A DNA stretch of 64,000 bases from Trichosphaerium sp. ATCC 40318 (GCA_038496445.1 JALMLS010000376.1:248001-312000), one strand, 5' to 3'; counted from the first letter of the stretch, positions 12,199-61,505 are shown. Numbers and translations: made by a program. The notes: generated by a model not told the origin, from the sequence alone.

Positions 12199-13772
12199 AT
12201 GGATTGCGGCAATGAGCACCCTCTAAAAGGTTTATGGCTTGTATATTTTTATAAAACGCTTATACGTATTCAGGAGTGGAGCAGATACATGGTGGCGGCG
12301 TCTTTCAGGCAAATAATACATTTGGGGCTTACGAACCCGTACATTCCTCTCACACACCCCACAAGGTGGTACACAATGTATATAGCCTTATTGCAAAAAT
12401 TGCTGGCCTAGCAAGTCTGTGGTTCATTTGCTCAGCACTAACGAACGGAACGAACAAAGTACGCGAATTGAAACCCATACAGCATCATTCTACGTATTAC
12501 AAAAAATAGTACAAACGCAACGTGGTAATACTGACACATGCAAGGTTATTCTTACCACAGCACCTTACCCAATTACACTAACGATGATTCAATTCATTAC
12601 CATCATAATATACTGTCTCATACTCATTAAATTTAATTTAACGAGAGTACGTACACGAATTGCATGCGAACAAAACAAAAACGCCACACAAAGTGACATT
12701 TTACTAATAAAAATATGAACTCTCAGGTGACAACTCTAAAAATGACAAATGCAACAATCCTACGAAAAGTCATCCCTCTATCAATCGGTCATATTGGAAC
12801 ACGCCTATTTCATCAATTTGCACTAGAGTTTGTTCCAGTATCATTTGTACATACAGTAAAGGTATGACTCACTTGTTAAAGAACAAATGACGCTAAAAAA
12901 ACTCATTCTACAAAATCCCATGTTCTATGTCATTGCTAGAAAAAAACTAATTAATAACCTATTAAACAGGCCACAGCACCAATTTTCGCTATTATACTAT
13001 CTCGGGTTATAATGAATGAACGACATTCATTTAAAATTATAATGACTATTTTCCCTATCATTAGTGGCGTAGCTATAGCTGCAACAAACGAATTAAACTT
13101 TCATTATATCGGATTCGTATCAGCTCTTTGTGGAACTTGTTCAATAACTCTATTGAACGTATTTACAAAACGTATTCTAGTAGAGAAACAGATCACTGAA
13201 ATACAACTATTACTTATGACTGATATTCTTGGTATATGCTTACTTACACCTTTTTGGGTATTACTAGAAGGACTAGGATTATTTCAACATCTTTCAGAAA
13301 ATGGAACGCATTTGATAACTCTTGTTTTTCTTAACGGATTTTGCTACTTTGGTCAAGTTATACTCGCTTTTGCTCTTATTAATACAGTATCTAACTTGAC
13401 TTACTCTGTTTGCTCTGTAAGCAAACGTGTTTTCGTCATTCTTATGGCTGTAATGTACTTTGGTAATGAGGTACTTCTTCACTTTTCGTTCGTTTTTTTT
13501 TTCTTTTTTTTGTACTTTAGAATCCAAACAATTCTTTGTCCGTTATTCACCTTTTTTTAAAGATTAAGCCTCTGAATGCGTTTGGAATAGCTTTGGCTAT
13601 TGTAGGCACGTGTAACTAGTTAGCCCATTATACTAAACGTCAATCACAATGTGAACTAATCTCTGGTATTGTAGGTACCCTACTTTACTCAAAACTGAAC
13701 TATGACGAACTTGCTAAGCATAAAAAGAGTACACGAGCAACCTATGAAAATATATTGAAAATATCAAAATAA
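12199..13772 (+). CDS. Triose-phosphate transporter family / SLC35E1-like nucleotide-sugar transporter
   Basis: Motifs PYPITLTMIQF, VPVSFVHTVKATAPIF, ELNFHYIGFVSAL and LTYSVCSVSKRVFVI. Confidence 0.9.
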
Positions 13773-13926
13773 TTCGTTTTAACAACATAATTGACATTGT
13801 AAACAAAAAAGACACCAAAAAAGGATAAACATCGAAAATGAAAAGCGTGAAACAAACAAAAAAAAAAAGACAGATTACGTGTAACGCAAGTTTTATTTGT
13901 ATTTCGTTATTAAAAGCAAGCTTGAT

Positions 13927-15003
13927 TTAACTTCTTGAAGGAAAAACCCCCTGTAGGGCGATAATATAATTCATTACCAGTGTTGGATGGACATTATCTC
14001 CACCTGCTGGTCGTGTAGCGGCAAAAGCGGAACCAGAAACAGTAGTAGTTGTTTCCTCACCTTTTTTTTTGGATTAGTACAAACCCATATTACGAAAAAA
14101 ACACTTACTGATAGTGAAAGTAGCTGCACTTGAATCAACAGTCATACCACTAAGATCGAGATTTGCAGTCGTTGTACCAATACTCTGGTTTTCATCTACA
14201 GATATAGGACAATCTGTACTGGTTTCTTGGCATGACTTTACAACACGAACAAGGTTTTGTTCTTCTCCTGCGGAGGAGCATGGAGGAGTAGAGGAGGAAC
14301 CACCAGTTGAAGTTGTTGCCTTAGTATTAAGATCTAAAGTAACGTCCTGTTCTGTTTGACCTGTAAGGGTTGCAGTTCCTGATACACTTACAGCTTGAAC
14401 AGTAATATCCTGCACTTTTTGGGCTGCGTAAGTGTGCATATGTGCTGCAGCGTTCGTTTCTGATCCTTTTTCATCCCCGAGTCTAAAGGAAACAGAGGTA
14501 TCTAGGGCCATAGTTAATCTCGATTATAGTTGTAGATGTTAGACTTTACCTGGATGTGTTGCTGCGCGACCTCGCAAGTCTGGCAGTCTATTGTAATGTA
14601 AGTTTGGGCCTGAACTAAATCGCGTACGCAAAAGTTGTACGACCATCACCACCATATATAGTACCAAGGAGTGAGAATAGAGCCGAATTTTGGCTGATAG
14701 CTTGTAAAGAATATCAATATTTGTTTTTGCAACTAGAACTGGAAATAAAGGCTTGTTGGTGCGTACGTAGTATTTGTCCCTCACAAAAAGCCCATCCGCG
14801 TGGTGCGAAATTGCCTGCAAACATCTTTATTTCCCCAATAAACGGCTCTGTACACAACACAGCCGTAAAGAATAGCGCAGCTAGTACGATTTGCTAACCT
14901 TATGTTAGAAGCTAAAATAACCAAATGCTCTTGTAGAGGCTAAAACGCGGCTGGAAATAATATAAAATAAAAAAGACAAAGATAAGCTTACGAGTTTGTT
15001 CAT
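13927..15003 (-). CDS. Secreted phage tail-collar domain / MdpB-like fibre protein, copy 1 (5 introns)
   Basis: Spliced product MNKLQIVLAALFFTAVLCTEPFIGEIKMFAGNFAPRGWAFCEGQILPISQNSALFSLLGTIYGGDGRTTFALPDLRGRAATHP...AHMH...DNVHPTLVMNYIIALQGVFPSRS. Confidence 0.92.
14618..14897 (-). repeat. 280-nt dispersed repeat, inverted relative to 40016-40295 (5 mismatches)
   Basis: Manual alignment of the reverse complement against 40016-40295. Confidence 0.95.
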
Positions 15004-36279: not shown

Positions 36280-39200
36280 ATGTCGTACGACGATCTTGAT
36301 GAAGATGAATTACGAGAAGAACTAGAGGAGCTAGAACGAAAGTTCGAAGACGCACAACGCAAGCTAAAGGCAGAAAAAGCCAAAACAACTGCAGCAGAAA
36401 CGAAATACAACAAAGTAAGGCTAATTATGTTACAAGTAAAGTAAAACCGTTGTAAGGCAGTGTCAAAATCGCGAAGGAGTGGTAAATCATCCAGTCAAAT
36501 AGAAAAAGCCAAAAATGCAGCTATACGAAAATTACGCAACTGCGAAACAGATCTAGCAAACGCGGAAGATAAGATCACTGAGTTAAAAACCCAAAACACG
36601 GATTTAGAAGCTCAAGTGGAAACAGCGGAGCGCAAATTACGTAACATAAGGGTACAGACTTTAAAGCGACAGCAACGCTTTGTTTCTCCATTCTGAAGCG
36701 TCAATCGTTGCTGTTATGTTTCAATGGCGTTAACGGGTTAATAGAATCAAGAAAACAATGACAGTGGTGACCTGGAAGCTGCTCTGGAAAAGATAACTAT
36801 TCTACAGCAAGAGTACGTAATGTCTAACTCGTTTTTTATTCATGATACTGTAGGAAAGACAGAGCAACTGAACTTGCTCTTCAAAAAGGCAGACAGTTGA
36901 ACAGTCGAGTAGGAGAGATTGATTCAGCTCAAGACAAGCTCGATGAAATCACCAATAGAGCTACTGAAGCTGAACAAGATGCCACACAACTAAGAACAAA
37001 GTAGGATTTAATTTTCTAACTTTCTTTTTTGTTAACTGGTGTTTTAGAATGTCTAGTTTACGTGCGAAGCTAGCTGAAGCTGACGACAAGGCTTCCATCT
37101 TCTTGGAACGCTTAAATGAGGCCCAGGAAAGAGCGAATGGCGCAGAAGCGAGGACAGAGCACCTACAACGCCAGTTGAGTGGTCAAGTAGGAGAAATTGA
37201 TTCAGCTCAAGGCAAGCTCGATGAAATCGCCAACAGAGCTGCTGTAGCTGAACAAGATGCCACCCAACTCAGAACAAAGTATGGTTTGATTTTTTTGCCT
37301 CGCTTTTTTGTTAACTGGTGTTGTAGAATGTCTAGTTTACGTGCGAAGCTAGCTGAAGCCGATGACAAAGCTTCCATCTTCTTGAACCGCTTAAATGAGG
37401 CCCAGGAAAGAGCGAATGGAGCAGAGACAAGGGTAGAGCAACTACATCGCCAATTACAACTAGAGCGTAGCGCTAGTAATAATGCTACTGAACAACAAGA
37501 AGTACACTTACACCTTTTTTTTTTGAAGTACTCAGTGTTTCTAGGATATTGTTGCTTCTCTTGCAGAAAAACAAGAAGACTTAGCACGTCTTGAAAACAC
37601 AAATGCAAGTCTCCGTGCAAGTTTACGTGCAGCGGATGATAAGGAGAAAATCCTAGAAGAGCAGATTGAAAATTTGAAGCAAGCTTCTGCTAGTGGAGGC
37701 TCTGCAGAAGAGACTTATCGTATTGAAGTTAACTCACTGCGCAGTCAGATTCATACCCTTGAAGATAGGTATCAGCTAGCACTTTGTACCTCTAGTTCTG
37801 ACTGTTTTTGATTAGAGTGGAGACACAACAAAGCGATTTAACTGAATCTCGTACTGAAAATACTCGTTTGGAGGCTTTGCTCAAGAAGACAAGAGTACGC
37901 TGTTGCTTATCACAGTCTATGTTTAATCATCAAGTAGGCGTCTAATGCAGCAGAGTTACAGTCAAATAAAGTTGACACTGCACTTGGAAACAAACTAGCT
38001 GAAGAATTAGCTTATGCTGAAGAGTTATCTGAAAAGTATCGCATACAGGTCAATTCAAAAGTGCGTAATATTATCTTGAGGTTTATTCATTACTTACTCT
38101 ACCAAAAAACAGGATCAAGTGATCAACACGCTAGAAGAGGAGATTTCATCTTTACGACAAAGGTACTCTTTTGATTTTTTTCCAATAGACACGTGACGTT
38201 GTATCTTAGAATCAAGTCCAAAGAAGACTATGTACATCAACTAGAATGCAACGAACAAAGATTAAAGAGCCGTGTTGCAGAAGTTGAATCAAGTATAGAA
38301 ATACTTGAGGATAGCGCAAATGCTAGTGATGCAATGAGGCGTATGCAAGACCGTATTGATGAGCTTGTGGCTAGATTAAATAAAGAAATACTCCGCGCTG
38401 ATACAGCGCAAGAAAAACTTGATAAACAAGAAGATACATTATCAGTATTAAGTACTGATAGAGCTACCTTCCATTCTCAAGTTGAGGAATTGAAACGCAA
38501 ATTACAAATTGCTCGCCTCGAGATAGGTACATTAGTCTTCTCTTTCTAGTGTGTTAACTTTATATGATAGACAATAAAGAAGGTTCTGTAGGTGGTACAC
38601 TTACACAGCTAACAGAGGCCGAGCACAAGCTTATGCGAAATGAAACCCTTATCAATAGTTTAAGGTGCGAGCGTCCATTGTTTACGCACAGGCTTATTTG
38701 AGATTGTAGAGCACAACTTAGAGGTGCTCAAGACAAACAAGAAGAGAGTGAAAGACTGCTAAGACAAAACCAAGATGAACCAACAACATCTCTTGAGTCA
38801 GAAAACCTAAAACGACGCATACAAGTTAGTACAAGCCAACGTGCTCTAGTGCATACTTACTGATCTTTAAGCTCTTACAATCTCAAATGCGTGAAGCCGA
38901 TGATAAAGTACAGACTCTTACTGATACGTACGTGCAGTAGTAAGAGTAAATAAGGATGTTTACTTTAAATAGTGTTGAAGAAATGCATGGAGAAAAGGAT
39001 AACCTTGAAAATAATGTGTCCAAGCTTAAAGCTCGTTTGGATGAAGCAAACAATCAAATTTCTATCTTAGAGACAAGCACTGTACGTTAATTGATAAATA
39101 TGTATTTGCACGTGCTTATAGTGTTGTAGGACTCGAGAGAGATTATCAGCCGTCAACAAGATAGAAATGATGAGCTACAACAAGAATTGACTCTGTTAAA

Positions 39201-39926: not shown

Positions 39927-41045
39927 ATGCGCAACCACGTACGCGAAAAAGACATTGGTTTGTCATCAACTCATTAAATTGTGTATAACTTGCAATGCCT
40001 AACACACAATTCTGTTTAGCAAATCATACTAGCTGCGCTATTCTTTACGACTGTGTTGTGTACAGAGCCGTTTATTGGGGAAATAAAGATGTTTGCAGGC
40101 AATTTCGCACCACGCGGATGGGCTTTTTGTGAGGGACAACTACTACGTACGCACCAACAAGCCTTTATTTCCAGTTCTAGTTGCAAAAACAAATATTGAT
40201 ATTCTTTACAAGCTATCAGCCAAAATACGGCTCTATTCTCACTCATTGGTACTATATATGGTGGTGATGGTCGTACAACTTTTGCGTACGCGATTAAAAC
40301 TGTTTGTTAAATTTCAGCTTATGAGATCACAAGCCTTCCGAACCTCAAACATCGTTCTCCTGTAGGATTTGGCCATGGTCCAGGTACATAAAGTAAAGTT
40401 TGTGAATCAGCGTTAACATTATCAAAAACAGGCCTATCGAACTACAATATTGGTCAACAACGGGGACAGGTAGTTAGCAGTATCGCTGCCCATACCCATG
40501 GGTTTACCGGTAATACCGCTACAGTAAATACCACGACAACAGTAGTGGCGAATGGCACTGCTGGTGTTACACTCTCAGGTTCAACTACGCATACTGTTAG
40601 TGCCACAGTTACCCGCGAAACAACAGTTTCTACAAAAGCGCCTGAAAGTACCCCTCCATGCGTATCTGGCTCAGAATTTAACTTGGTGCGGACCCTTGAT
40701 ACTTGTCAGAGCGGTGCATGCCCAACGCCTATTATAACCGACCATACCCTTTCAACAGCAAATGTTACCTATGATTTGCAAGGCGCAGTCAACCTGACAA
40801 CTGTTGCTGCAACAGCAGGTTAGTGATAATGTTTCATTTTTTTTTTTGTCTTTTTTTTGTGTTTTGTGAATGCTTTGTCGCTTTTTCTTAATGTTGTTTG
40901 TGATTTAGGTACCCTTACTGGTAATACTACTGTTACGGTTACTGGTACAACAGAGCAAACTACTGCTAGCGGTGATAATTTTCACCCAATTCTTGGTATT
41001 AACTACATTATTTCTCTGTTTGGAATCTTTCCATCAAGAAGTTGA
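39927..41045 (+). CDS. Secreted phage tail-collar domain / MdpB-like fibre protein, copy 2 (5 introns)
   Basis: Spliced product MRNHQIILAALFFTTVLCTEPFIGEIKMFAGNFAPRGWAFCEGQLLPISQNTALFSLIGTIYGGDGRTTFALPNLKHRSPVGFGHGPGLSNYNIGQQRG..AHTH...DNFHPILGINYIISLFGIFPSRS. Confidence 0.92.
40016..40295 (+). repeat. 280-nt dispersed repeat, partner of 14618-14897
   Basis: Manual alignment; mismatches at 40026, 40050, 40140, 40227 and 40245. Confidence 0.95.
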
Positions 41046-41518
41046 GTACATTTCATGCATTTTGTTTTTTAGAAAGTACTCAAACAATAAACCGTTACGT
41101 TTTCAACTTGTTGTTGGTGACACTTATTCTTTTTTCATTTTTATGTGTTATGCTCATATAGTTTGGCATGTCTTAACTACGTTGCATTTTGGCACTTATT
41201 GCGCTGTTTGGTAGACTAAACACTAGCCGGTTTAGTTTGAGGGTTGAATTCACAATTTTTGTTGACAGTTACCTTTCACGCATCCAGTTAGACCTATTAC
41301 ATTATATTTACTGTTGCTGGTGTTGTTTAGAAAGGTGTCTTTTAGAAGATGTATTTAAAGTCCATGCAAAGTGACAAACAGATTTTTATCACGTAGTAAA
41401 ACAGTACATAGTTTTATTATGGTTACACGAAGTTCAATGGATCGAGTTTGAAGAAAAGAAATTCAAATGTTAACAGTAAACCTTTCACCACTAAAGATTT
41501 TTTGTTGACTATCTAACA

Positions 41519-55935: not shown

Positions 55936-58900
55936 ATGGTACAAGTTGCTTTTTTATGCGTTTTAACACTTTGAGATAGGCTTCACGTAAGGTACCTGCT
56001 ATACCTTCAGCAAAGAGGTACGAATAATCTAAAAAAAGTTATACTTACCGTGTCTTATTTACAGAAGAAAACCACTGCCACAGCCCAAAATACCACACAG
56101 GGTCAATAGAAAGCCTCTTTTAAAGAACTCAACGTCTGCGCGTCGAATGCCACCAAAAGCTCCTCAAAAGCCTGGAAAATCATTGCCTGGCATACCCAAG
56201 AAGCCAAAAAGCTTAGCACAGTGCGTTTGCGTAACGTTTTCCGAATTGACATTTTTTACAGGCTGAGGAGGAAACTACCTCCCAAGCGCCCAAGTGCCTT
56301 GAAACGTAGCGTGTCTGTCGCTCCCAAACGGGTACAATAAATACTGAAGTGTTCAGTCATAATGTTCTTTCAGGCGGTTCTATCTGCAGTGGTAAATAGG
56401 CGTAAATCGTTGGAAGATGTCTCGCCAAGAGGAGAAGGGCAAGAAGGCGTCGCTGTGACACCTCTTAATCTCTCACCACCCGGAACAATGTCACCAGCTG
56501 AAGATGAACCACCAATGATACCGTCAAAGCCGTCACCTAGAACTCTAAGTCAAAAGTCTCAAGCGACGTCTCCTGGAGCATCACCAAAGCTACCATCAAA
56601 GCCATCAGCAAGAACTCTTAGTCAAAAGTCTCAAGCGACATCTCCTGGAGCATCACCAAAGCTACCGTCAAAGCCATCAGCAAGGACTTTAAGTCAAAAA
56701 TCTCAAGCGACATCACCAAAGATACCCTCAAAACCATCACCAAGAACTCTAAGTCAAAAATCTCTGGCAACATCTCCTGGATCGTCACCGAAGGTAGCTA
56801 AAACGCCACCAAAAGTGCCGTTTAAGGCGGTTGCAGACTTGCCTAAGAAGTCTGCAACAGTGCCCAAGTTGTCTGTTAAGTTGTCACCAAGTACAACACC
56901 TAAGATCTCACCAAGAGCCAATTCCTCGCCTGGATTTTCACCAAACTTATCGCCTCGAAAAGGACCTGCAAAGTACCCAAGACCTGGTAAGAAGTCACCA
57001 AAGCGTGGTTTCAAACAAGGCCCAAAAAAGAGGCCTCCTAAGCGACGCCCGGGTAAAAAGGCACCTCCAAAAAAGAGAGGTTTCGCACCAAAGAAAGGCA
57101 AGAAAATGATGCCAAAAGCTTCGCTTGGCAAGAAAATACCCCTTAAAGCTTCTCTTGGTAAGAGAATATCGCCTGCAGTTTCACCAAGGAAGATAATGCT
57201 CCCAAAAGTTTCTCCAGCGAAGAAAAAGGCTCCAGGACCAGCTAAAACAAAGCCGACGCCAAATCCGAAACCATTTCCTGTGCCACCACCAAAGCCTAAA
57301 GGTAGGAAGGTTGTAGCATTACGAAAACGTAGGCCAGCTCCAAAGAAGTCTAGAGTGGGTGGTAAGAAGCAAGGTGCAACTGCAGCTCCAGCAAAGGTTT
57401 TGAAAGGTCTGCCTCCAAAGAAGAAAGGAAGACCTCCACGAAAAAGAGGCTTGCCTAAACGTGCCCCTGGATCTCTTAGAAGCACTAACTCTGCACAAGT
57501 TGAAACATCAGATGCACCAGTTCAGCGTTCAGCGTCTATGGGTCTTGAGACTATTGACCTTACTAAGAATGACCCTAGACCTACTCCAACTCTCAAGCAA
57601 GTTTCCGCACCAGTGGTGTCTTCAAAACAATTAGTGAGCGCTCAGCCATTGAATGCTGAAGGCATTGAAGAACGAACATTTGCTCTAAGGACTGATGCAT
57701 CTGATAGAATTGATCGAAAACGTTCTCAGCAATTTGTATGGGTACATATTGTAGAAGGACGGAATTTTGGTATTGGTAGAGTTGCTGTTGTGATAAAGAC
57801 AAAGAACGTTGTTAACAACATTGAGAAGAAGAAATTCAGCACCGACAAGCAAAAAGATCCAAGCTGGAATACGCGGTTTAAAATGTATGTAGCTTTTGTT
57901 GCTTTCTTAGGATTAAACTTATGTATTGTTATTGTAGATCAATAGCTGATCCAGATGTCGAAGTATTGATGATATATGCAACAAGAGACAGACGTGAAAT
58001 TGGACATAAGAAGATTCACCTACGAGAAAGTTCAAGAAGTTTTGATACACCCAACAAGTACATGTTTTTTTTACACATTTTTTTGAGCTAATTGCTATTT
58101 CAATAGACTTGATAAATGGTATACACTTGGACAAACGAAAGTTAGGGTTATTTTAGAGTACTTTGATTTACGTAAGTGCAACTATAATTCTTTTTCAATG
58201 CAAATTTGTTTTCTTGCACGTGTTTATTTCCAAGTGCATGTGCAATGGTTTTTTGTTTATTTGTGATGTAGGTTCCAAGATTACATTACCATCTAATGTA
58301 CAACACGTTGCTCATGGTGGATCTGACGGATTTGATATTAATTCAGTACCAAATGAATGGAAAGTTTTATTCAAGCAAGCTGGTATTCGTAAAAAGGTGC
58401 GTACCTCATTGTTGCATCTTAAGTCTATTACAAATAGTGAAATATTTTGTTTATGTTTATGCGTAGGATCTACAGAATGCGGATGTCGCTAAGAATTTGT
58501 TTAACTTGATTGAAGAACATGGCGGTGTTGTATGTCTTTTTAGTTCAACGCGTGTGTTCTTGTTATAACAATAATTTAGCAAAACGCTCAAGATACTGCT
58601 GGTGATTCAGAGCTTGATTCAAGCGGTATGAGCCAAGCTGCTACAGCAGCTGAAGATACAGTGAGTCTTTATTGTTTGTTATCCGTGTAACCTAACGAAT
58701 ATCCTTAGCCTCTACCGCCTGGTGGTCGTCTGTACAAAGCCATGACCAAGCATCCTTATACAGGGGTAATATTTATTTGTTTAATTTGTTTTGGTTGTTT
58801 GTACTGATAGATGTTTTAGCAATACCATGATGAACTCTCGTTTCCAGAAGATGTTGAACTTGATGTTATTCGTGAAGAGACAGATGATTGGTGGATATGT

Positions 58901-61505
58901 CGCTATGAGGAGGAAACAGGACTTGTTCCTACAGCTTATATTGATAAAATTGAAGGGTCTGAACCTACTCCAGCAGAAACTAAAAAAGTTCTAAAGCCTC
59001 CACCTGCACGCAAACCTAAAAAAACACCTGTTGACGTCAAGTTGCGAGAAGTAATTACACCACAGTCATATCTCAATATACTTATTCTTTTGATTAGGGT
59101 TGTATCTTTGGAGCAAGAGCCATCAGCAAATATGATGCGCAAGAGGCTGAGGAGCTTGGATTTGATGTGGATGATATTGTACACGTTGAGCGAGAGAAAA
59201 AGGGTAATTGGTGGGAAGGTTACATTGACGGAAAGAGGGTATTGTATAAACATGTCATGATATGTTCTTACTTTTGTTGTACTAGGGATGGGTACCGTCA
59301 ACTTTCTTTAAGAAAATTGATATGGAACGTGTAGCGCCTCTTGAGCAAGTTCTTGGTTTGTTTGATTTTGCAGCAGTTAAAGATACTATGATTTCTTTCT
59401 CTACTGTATGATATCTATTTCTTGTCTTATGAAACGATAAAAACTTACACAACTGCTTTAGGGTGATGTACTGTTCGTTATTAGTAAAAAGGGTAATTGG
59501 TGGCGCGCTCAGAATAAAAGTGGCAAGTCAGGTTTGATTCCTGCTAATTATGTCAAGCTACTTCCACTTGGAGAGGTACGATCGTTGTAGTGTATAAACA
59601 AAGTATGTAAGCTAACTTTTATGTAACAGGAAGAAGCCGCTATAGCCGAATGGAAAGCGGAAGAAAAGAAGTTTGTAGATGAGAGCAAGGCTGAGAAGAA
59701 AAAAGAAAAGAAAACAAAGAAACCAGAAAAAAGTGATAAACCCGAGAAAGAGAAGAAAGACAAACCTGAAAAGGAGAAGAACAAGCCTGAGAAGATAGAA
59801 AAGCCCGAGAAAGATAAGAAGGACAAACCTGAAAAGGAGAAGAAGGATAAACCCGACAAAGAAAAGAAAGCTGAAAAAGATAAGAAAGAGAAGACAGAAA
59901 AGCCCGAGAAAGAGAAGAAGGATAAGCCAGAGAAGACTGAGAAAGAAAAGAAAGAAAAGCCTGAGAAGGTAAAGAAAGATAAACCAGAGAAGGAGAAGAA
60001 GGATAAACCAGAGAAGACCAAAAAGGAAAAGAAGAAGGATGCTGATGAAGAAGCACCAAAGTCAGTAAAGAAGCTTAGTTCAAGAAAATCAAAGAGAGAC
60101 GTTAAAAGATCTGAGTCTACTTCATCATCGAGCTTCTTTAAGATTTCAAAGAAGCGTGGCGCAAGTGTTAGTACCATAAAGAAGCAGAAGGCTACCGGTA
60201 CACCAAGGGAGGTTGATGATGAAGAATCTTCATCATCAAGCAGCTCTAAGAAGTCCTCCAGGAAACTCAAGAGCTCTGGCGCACCAAAGAAGCATAAGAG
60301 ATCTGTTAGTACTAGTAGTACTACTAAGGATATATCAAAATCGAAGTCAAAGAAATCAGTAAAGAAAAAGTCTCCAAGAAAGCCAACTGGGTCTAAGACT
60401 GAAAGTGAACCTGAACCTGATACTAAACCGAAAAGTAAAGCTACACAAGCTAAAGAAGAAGAAGAAGCTATCGTGTGGCCTATTAGCGAGAAATGGGAGG
60501 CGGAATTTGATTTTAATGGTGAAGTAGGCGAACTAAGTTTCGCTGAAGGTGACATTATCACTATTCTTCACATGTACGATGGAGATGATTGGTGGCAAGG
60601 TAACCTTTCTGTTAAAACAAAACTTTGTTATTTTAACGAAACAAAAAGGTCGTAGTTCAGATGGCACGGAAGGATTAGTACCAAAGAACTATTTCAAAGC
60701 CGTACGGACAAAAAGAAAACAGAACTTTGTTTGAGAAAAAAAAAGTCAAACACTTTCTCTTTTGTTTGAATTCAATTCTTTTTATTAACCCTTTTGTACA
60801 AGTGTGCATCACCTGAAGTACCCTTACCCACTGTGTACGTCTATTTACGTAATTTCTAGCCACTTACCTTGTTTTAGGCCGATCCCAAAGCCTATTGTAG
60901 CTGCGCCTATCCCACCACCTTTGGTTATTCCAGAGACGATTCCTGTGCCTCCACCGATTTCCCCTACAGCTCCTAGTAAAGTAAGTTTGTTGTGTACGTG
61001 CATTGTTTTATTGCTAACAAACTCATTTAAGGCACCTCCTTTAAGTCCAATGAGCCCTAAAATCCCGGATATGCCAGATCCAGGTGCCGATGAACATGAG
61101 CCTATAAAGAGTGCACCTACGTTACCTAATCCCCCTGATGTTCCAACATCACCTACACCAACAGCATCAGCGCCTAAGCCAAGTACGTTCTAAGAACATA
61201 GATTTTATTAGGAATAGTTTTTCATGTTTCTCTTTTTTTTGTAGAGAACGCGCAACCTCCTGGTCGTATGTCTATGTTAGAGCAGATTAAATCTGCAAAA
61301 AAGGGACAACTCAAGAGTGCTAAAGCACGTGAGACAGGTCCTGCATTGAAAGATACAACTGGTTTGGCCGGTTTACTGAAGACTGCTATGGAGCAAATGA
61401 GGTAAGATTTTTTTAGTTAGCAGGTGAGGTTAAGTACTTATTACTCACAGGGACGCTATTGATAATGAAGAAGATCTAGAAGATGATGAAGACTGGAGTG
61501 TATAG
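55936..61505 (+). CDS. Large WASP-like actin regulator: Pro/Lys-rich - C2 - CRIB/GBD - 3xSH3 - KE repeat - SH3 - polyPro - WH2/C/A
   Basis: C2 (VHIVEGRN..DPSWNTRF); GBD (ITLPSNVQHVAH..VPNEWKVLFKQAGIRKKDL); four SH3 domains with WW..GLVP..Y signatures; C-terminus GRMSMLEQIKS..LKS..LAGLLKTAMEQMRDAI..EDDEDWSV. Confidence 0.88.
56518..56790 (+). repeat. Coding tandem repeat of about 72 nt (PSKPSARTLSQKSQATSPGASPKL), about 4 copies
   Basis: Visible in both DNA and translation; the third copy is shortened. Confidence 0.9.
59690..60040 (+). repeat. Coding low-complexity repeat (EKKDKPEK)n
   Basis: Purine-rich repeated codons in the linker between SH3 domains 3 and 4. Confidence 0.9.

Follow-up and report, generated by a model that had tools for sequence, protein, structure and literature searches.

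Few modules for the recognition of bacterial surfaces are as well known as phage tail-fibre tips, and the tips of gp12 and gp37 are intertwined trimers in which histidines bind a metal on the axis. Bacteria also possess a family of stand-alone collar proteins, which we take to be COG4675 (MdpB) and for which no NCBIfam model was found. Gene transfer from bacteria to amoebae is common. Collar-domain genes are carried, in addition, by virophages, where they often stand three in a row (PMC3671162, PMC12724248); for these three-gene sets, the tripartite tail proteins, heterotrimers have been proposed (PMC12724248). In the literature that we searched we met with no account of a collar-domain gene in the nuclear genome of a eukaryote. 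Here we describe two genes of this kind, g1 and g2, on a stretch of 64,000 nucleotides (nt) of DNA from Trichosphaerium sp. ATCC 40318, referred to below as the window. Our reading, to which we give a probability of roughly 0.8, is that an ancestor of this amoeba-like protist acquired a bacterial stand-alone collar gene, most likely from a Bacteroidota-like donor, and that g1 and g2 are old paralogues descended from it. The gene transfer itself is clear; the activity that we suggest for the two proteins is a proposal based on homology.

The two genes and their bacterial relatives

Gene models were assembled by script from both strands of the window. On the reverse strand g1 occupies 13927..15003, from an ATG at 15003 to a TAA stop ending at 13927, and its six exons (15003-14992, 14893-14767, 14700-14628, 14587-14550, 14501-14109 and 14060-13927) encode 258 amino acids (aa). 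On the forward strand g2 occupies 39927..41045, from an ATG at 39927 to a TGA stop ending at 41045; here too there are six exons (39927-39938, 40020-40146, 40213-40285, 40334-40383, 40432-40818 and 40909-41045), encoding 261 aa. These were the only collar loci found in a scan of the window: they are dispersed, 25 kb apart and in opposite orientation. All ten introns are of the GT..AG type, measure 40-98 nt and contain in-frame stops, and the series of phases (0,1,2,1,1) is the same in the two genes. The correspondence extends to position: introns 1-3 interrupt the same codons, intron 4 falls in a CCA G|GT context common to both, and intron 5 lies at positions no more than two codons apart within a low-complexity stretch. 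An AATAAA follows each stop codon at a distance of 30-45 nt, at 13892..13897 on the reverse strand (30-35 nt downstream of the g1 stop) and at 41086-41091 on the forward strand downstream of g2. As read from the sequence these hexamers are consistent with a eukaryotic poly(A) signal, which in AT-rich DNA may also arise by chance.

Pfam was scanned exon by exon, and whole spliced proteins were compared by means of local scripts and a family profile. Collar (PF07484, gathering score 24 bits) matched exon 2 alone at 35.5 and 35.8 bits in g1 and g2 respectively (profile positions 1-23), and exon 3 alone at 36.1 and 37.2 bits (positions 25-47). Because the two matches adjoin on the profile, intron 2 splits the domain exactly, the absent position being the split codon. 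The collar domain spans aa 21-78 in both proteins and is spread over exons 2-4 (14566..14845, reverse strand, in g1; 40068..40355, forward strand, in g2), with PF07484 on exons 2 and 3. It is followed by an HxH motif, HMH in g1 (aa 104-106; 14434..14442, reverse strand) and HTH in g2 (aa 108-110; 40491..40499, forward strand), which aligns with a histidine pair (H95/H97) invariant across 92 bacterial relatives. Both proteins end in the C-terminal family motif NYII..G.FPSRS, identified by alignment and family profile at aa 237-258 of g1 (13930..13995, reverse strand) and aa 240-261 of g2 (40977..41042, forward strand). Gp10_C (PF21939) was not detected in exons 5 and 6 of either gene, each scanned as a separate piece; among the bacterial relatives it reaches only 24-25 bits, under the cut-off of 27. 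A preliminary description of this DNA had placed two six-exon genes here, with five phase-matched introns each and with products carrying a collar signature, an HxH motif and the family C-terminus. Our models coincide with it in gene ends and intron number, and all three protein features are present in spliced g1 and g2, a likeness to the family well beyond chance.

Scanning bacterial and archaeal genomes with a motif as seed yielded 270 relatives, and 80 of these loci were retained. Their proteins measure 160-206 aa (∼160-210 aa for the family) and align with spliced g1 and g2 from the first residue to the last. In blastp searches g1 gave E values of 1e-47 to 5e-48 against Bacteroidota proteins and g2 a best E value of 2e-49; the bacterial proteins matched are full-length, at 170-206 aa, and identities are ∼40% overall and 60-74% across the first 75-100 residues. 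A profile search of a 5.8-billion-cluster protein collection recovered at least 8000 relatives at E 1e-5; they bear names such as “microcystin-dependent protein”, “phage tail protein” and “tail fiber protein”, and in Pfam terms they contain Collar plus Gp10_C. No eukaryotic name occurs among the 120 best database relatives. A profile built from 92 bacterial proteins gave 176 bits for g1 and 191 bits for g2, with a match that spans positions 2-175 of its 175 and is interrupted in each case by ∼60-70 unmatched residues. The bacterial set has 63 columns with a conservation of 90% or more, and of these g1 retains 53 and g2 57 (84-90%). Where they depart from the family they do so in part together: L87 is deleted, P93 has become A, G157 has become S or T, and Q165 has become H in both, which argues for one acquisition before the duplication.

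The shared features comprise the PF(I/L)GEI..FAGNFAPRGWAFC collar, LPDLRGR, the HxH motif and the C-terminal NYIIAL.G.FPSR, all fully colinear; moreover, a subset of the bacterial proteins has what reads as a signal peptide at the place of the g1/g2 leader, and several paralogues are found per genome. Unlike the bacterial family, g1 and g2 reside in a eukaryote and have five introns each, carry ∼65 additional Ser/Thr-rich residues with three cysteines in the variable head region, and lack ∼6 residues immediately before HxH; g1 also lacks a loop, G.GPGL. Bacterial paralogues are often in tandem, whereas g1 and g2 are dispersed and inverted. Their lengths of 258 and 261 aa, together with an interval of ∼130 residues between HxH and the C-terminal motif, set the two proteins apart as a variant and not a plain member of the family.

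At the four bacterial loci that were examined the collar genes stand among housekeeping genes (e.g., IF-2, ATP synthase, cytochromes and a sulfotransferase) and occur in runs of two to four, as had been expected of MdpB-like homologues, which were described as often forming tandem paralogues. Two Bacteroidota loci (L049, 3556-4503; L100, 2307-4259) have a collar gene followed by a protein with a C-terminal sorting domain of the type IX secretion system (T9SS), a pairing that may be functional in the bacterial family. The top profile hits (P0001-P0025) are natural fusions, 315-358 aa long, in which a single protein holds two complete modules of collar plus head, an arrangement compatible with assembly between modules.

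The relationship to phage fibres is more distant. The family profile matched the solved tips of a long tail fibre (8kec, E 2e-7) and of T4 gp12 (1ocy, E 3e-5), aligning HxH and the C-terminal QPYL motif in the former and the collar motifs in the latter; exon 2 alone matched the tail fibre 9qgo at E 0.006. In PHROG tail-fibre families the full length of the bacterial relatives is matched by one module of larger proteins (455-1024 aa), with E values of 1e-24 to 1e-32 as against ∼1e-70 within the bacterial family. The stand-alone size, the housekeeping context and the weaker PHROG scores indicate that the source family is cellular and stand-alone, derived from the fibre tip, and not a phage fibre gene. 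An origin in a phage fibre, as first proposed, thus stands as regards a foreign source of prokaryotic type; it does not stand as regards the fibre itself, the nearest relatives being chromosomal bacterial proteins without a shaft. In common with fibre tips (T4 gp12 1ocy/1pdi/5iv5, 8kec and 9qgo) g1 and g2 have a collar domain with a head region after it. In contrast to them, they have no shaft or virion-attachment region and begin at the collar, are distant in sequence (E 2e-7 to 3e-5, by family profile), possess a signal-peptide-like leader, and have eukaryotic neighbours in the window with no phage gene context.

Origin of the pair

In a quick tree of 155 rows g1 and g2 are monophyletic (support of 98 in the Shimodaira-Hasegawa-like approximate likelihood-ratio test, SH-aLRT) and their nearest row is the bacterial protein P0082; the named neighbours, up to 33 rows out, are all Bacteroidota, with supports of 60-79. 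A careful tree of 105 rows, which included sequences from viral collections, joined g1 and g2 as sisters (100/98) and placed beside them P0061 (91/72), a protein with a leader, encoded on a metagenome contig. The gene adjacent to P0061 carries a Por_Secre_tail domain (T9SS sorting), which points to Bacteroidota. In both trees g1 and g2 are nested among bacterial sequences on a short stem. The preliminary description had named a phylogeny with bacterial relatives as a check on its proposal; the trees support the part of it that concerns a horizontal acquisition, with the pair inside the bacterial rows, Bacteroidota as neighbours and a weak backbone. Bacteroidota rows do not form one clade in these paralogue-rich trees, and since the nearest row differs from one tree to the other the donor can be called only probably Bacteroidota-like.

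Evidence from the surroundings concerns the nuclear setting. A distance of 367 nt separates the 3′ end of g1 from the end of a eukaryotic gene of the TPT transporter family, whose introns start with GTACGC, GTACGT and GTATGA (the GTACGC and GTACGT sites include window positions 12459 and 12647). Four of the ten collar-gene introns likewise start with GTACGC, a hexamer that occurs 32 times in the window where 15 ± 4 are expected by chance; the excess suggests an unusual preferred 5′ splice-site motif of the organism. The GC content at third codon positions (GC3) is 0.27 in g1 and 0.32 in g2, as compared with 0.24-0.35 in neighbouring host open reading frames (ORFs); neither this measure nor base composition separates host from donor, Flavobacteria being AT-rich too.

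Several points weigh against the reading that g1 and g2 descend from a bacterial gene and now serve as working cellular genes. The bacterial sample was chosen partly by likeness to the N-terminal motif of the query. The donor clade is weakly resolved: backbone supports range from 60 to 91, and the nearest row is P0082 in one tree, then P0061 in the other. Splicing and expression of both genes are presumed by comparative logic. The G.GPGL loop that g1 lacks is conserved in the family, and to our knowledge the bacterial stand-alone collar family has no established function. Finally, monomer AlphaFold2 models of bacterial relatives reached a predicted local distance difference test score (pLDDT) of 52 for P0082 (92-row alignment) and 38 for P0001 (20 rows), too low for a search by fold, so that the trimer and the metal site discussed below are deduced from homology.

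Three other accounts of the origin can be weighed on the same evidence. Arrival through a eukaryotic virus, be it a virophage, a giant virus or an integrated viral element, would be in keeping with the collar-domain genes of virophages (PMC3671162; PMC12724248) and with the collar-bearing ORFs that are present on IMG/VR contigs of 275-436 kb. These large viral contigs, however, match the collar only (aa 20-80) and neither the head nor the C-terminus, and no close relative emerged when viral contigs were scanned for the motif. Full-length relatives in the viral collections were limited to L081 and L082, contigs of 4.5-5 kb with three tandem genes each, whose leaders end in AQ or SQ like those of Bacteroidota relatives and whose scores are no better than those of bacterial genomes. 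No viral genes were noted beside g1 and g2 when the ten largest ORFs of the window were scanned, and a viral route appears very unlikely. The virophage tripartite tail proteins (PMC12724248) and OLV18/19 (PMC3671162) resemble g1 and g2 in having a collar domain, possibly co-assembling paralogues and a link to eukaryotes; they are nevertheless virion components encoded in viral genomes, whereas g1 and g2 are spliced cellular genes with no close relative on the viral contigs. An ancient family inherited vertically in eukaryotes, with no transfer, would account for the introns and for the saturated divergence of the paralogues, both of which bespeak long residence in the genome. It is highly improbable in view of the likeness to bacterial proteins, which is fully colinear and reaches 60-74% identity in the first 75-100 residues, the nesting of the pair among bacterial sequences on a short stem, the lack of any eukaryotic name among the 120 best database relatives, the exon-sized fragment search described below, which gave bacterial pieces only, and the lack of a report of nuclear collar genes in the literature searched. 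The strong likeness to bacterial proteins is also what contamination or a chimeric assembly would produce, an explanation whose probability is negligible: it is refuted by the five spliceosomal-type introns in each gene, and both genes lie between eukaryotic genes on one 64-kb stretch with GC3 within the host range. That g1 and g2 are integrated nuclear genes and not contamination had been proposed from the outset, and the spliceosomal introns, the host-like donor types, the TPT-family neighbour and the location on one contig uphold it.

The search for exon-sized eukaryotic fragments, made with the 42-aa exon 2, returned 15 short proteins, bacterial pieces only. One candidate for an exon-like eukaryotic relative, P0121, has a matching leader and was rejected: it is actually a frameshifted Bacteroidota collar gene beside IF-2. 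A Bacteroidota collar gene beside IF-2 (L099, 1114-1590) has its frameshift right after CEGQL, near the position of intron 2, and so mimics an exon in fragment searches.

Viral collections also hold miniature collar proteins of 78-84 aa, on IMG/VR contigs of 275 kb (L090, 3992-4225) and 14 kb (L092, 1328-1579). In these the collar is followed almost directly by a ..IIA.EG.YPSRS strand, and there is no head region.

Divergence, gene conversion and the insert

At the protein level g1 and g2 are 52% identical overall (133 of 255 aligned residues) and 35% identical in exon 5. At the DNA level the pair carries an inverted repeat of 280 nt, with arms at 14618..14897 and 40016..40295 that match at 98%. 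The repeat begins 4 nt before exon 2, passes through intron 2 and exon 3, and ends 10 nt into intron 3. Within this block synonymous divergence (dS) is 0.02, as against a proportion of synonymous differences (pS) of 0.76, i.e., saturated, outside it, where the proportion of nonsynonymous differences (pN) is 0.48. The block is a gene-conversion tract that covers the leader and most of the collar. Saturation of synonymous sites outside the block shows both the duplication and the introns to be old. For the C-terminal exon the values are 0.27 (pN) and 0.71 (pS).

The unmatched residues in the family profile correspond to an insert particular to this lineage. From HxH to the C-terminal motif the distance is ∼130 residues in g1 and g2 compared with ∼65 in the bacterial relatives, an excess of ∼65 aa. 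In g1 the insert falls in the gap between two profile matches, at approximately aa 153-215 (14059..14295, reverse strand, a span that includes intron 5); in g2 it is found at approximately aa 141-208 (40590..40793, forward strand) with the same three conserved cysteines. The pattern STPPC..(E/S)..NLVR....C......C is common to both, and its three cysteines are absent from the bacterial relatives. Ser and Thr make up 36-37% of the middle region of g1 and g2, as opposed to 17% over the whole of the bacterial relatives, and g2 has five N-x-S/T sequons overall. An exhaustive profile search with exon 5 found no relative of the insert in 1.84 billion representative proteins; a scan of Joint Genome Institute (JGI) metagenome contigs found none, and neither did a word-based search with the frame of g1 exon 5. 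The ESM Atlas yielded weak look-alikes only (0.81-0.83), phage-fibre-like in character, which serve as leads only.

Export, assembly and possible function

Both proteins begin with a signal-peptide-like leader of 18 residues (aa 1-18; 14852..15003, reverse strand, in g1; 39927..40061, forward strand, in g2). It was judged by rule of thumb, from hydropathy (11-residue Kyte-Doolittle windows) and the -3/-1 rule: one or two basic residues are followed by a hydrophobic core of ∼12 residues, in which the Kyte-Doolittle mean reaches 2.7 over 11 residues, and V-L-C occupies positions -3 to -1 before TEPF in both. Hydropathy gave no second hydrophobic segment in either protein. The predicted mature proteins would start 2-3 residues before the collar. 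Intron 1 splits the leader after codon 4 (14991-14894 in g1 and 39939-40019 in g2, both of phase 0). An N-terminal extension of more than 25 residues ahead of the collar motif occurs in 22 of the 92 bacterial relatives, and the aligned extensions read as signal peptides with the length and position of the g1/g2 leader. The export signal may therefore have arrived with the gene. What had been described as a eukaryotic signal peptide is accordingly present as a signal-peptide-like leader, as far as the rule of thumb goes, but need not be a eukaryotic invention, for some bacterial relatives have a leader of this kind.

From these elements a mode of action can be sketched. The leader would route the protein to the secretory pathway and be cleaved before TEPF. 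A member of the donor family amounts to the receptor-binding tip of a fibre and nothing else: a collar and a Gp10_C-like head, with HxH and, at the C-terminus, a strand running back to the collar. By homology with solved fibre tips the mature protein is expected to be an intertwined trimer with the collar at its base and, on its three-fold axis, a metal ion held by the HxH histidines. The enlarged distal region, probably glycosylated and disulphide-linked, would provide the binding surface. Gene conversion would keep the collar, the N-terminal module of the tip, near-identical in g1 and g2, and such near-identity would permit mixed trimers.

We favour a secreted trimeric surface-binding protein as the product of each gene. 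More specifically we suggest, tentatively and at less than even odds, a secreted or phagosomal lectin-like binder of glycans on bacterial or other cell surfaces. The same proteins could instead be structural, as heavily glycosylated components of a cell coat or cyst wall that bind no foreign surface. This role would be served by the signal-peptide-like leader, the high Ser/Thr content of the middle region (36-37% versus 17%), the five N-glycosylation sequons of g2 and the extra cysteines. It is made doubtful by the absence of a membrane anchor or a glycosylphosphatidylinositol (GPI)-like tail, the C-terminus being the conserved family strand, by the absence of repeats typical of wall proteins, and by the fact that the homologous solved domains are receptor-binding tips. 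A further alternative is that g1 and g2 now serve no function and are silent or decaying relics, a state to which the loss of the G.GPGL loop in g1 and of ∼6 residues before HxH in both might be ascribed. Against this, both frames and all 20 splice sites are intact despite saturated synonymous sites, 84-90% of the family-conserved columns are kept, pN is well under pS in the C-terminal exon, and the three insert cysteines are conserved between g1 and g2; decay is very improbable. At the opposite extreme lies a multigene repertoire of secreted trimeric recognition proteins, in which conversion would homogenise leader and collar, heterotrimers would form, and diverging, insert-enlarged tips would read bacterial surface glycans. 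We consider such a repertoire distinctly unlikely; were it real, it would be a combinatorial system for the recognition of prey or pathogens built from a phage receptor-binding domain.

Returning to the favoured surface-binding protein, we judge the biological weight of the locus to be moderate. A eukaryote has kept, spliced, duplicated and enlarged a tip module with predicted secretory export, which makes the locus a tractable starting point for learning what the module binds. The pair is also a clean example of a transferred gene that has been rebuilt: introns and an insert were gained, one part is held uniform by conversion and the rest diverges.

Elsewhere in the window three repetitive regions were observed. 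One, at 36894-37455, is a unit of ∼279 nt duplicated in tandem with 84-87% identity, and it overlaps an ORF of coiled-coil-like character (37049-37594). Four copies of a 60-72-nt repeat, 70-91% alike, lie at 56510-56811 within an ORF of 527 aa (56362-57945); the unit encodes a Ser/Pro/Lys-rich peptide, and the local GC content of 0.446 is the maximum of the window. Finally, 59711-60048 is densely covered by overlapping periodic repeats of 9, 15 and 24 nt, rich in AAG, GAG and CCx, and reads as a Lys/Glu/Pro-rich coding stretch.

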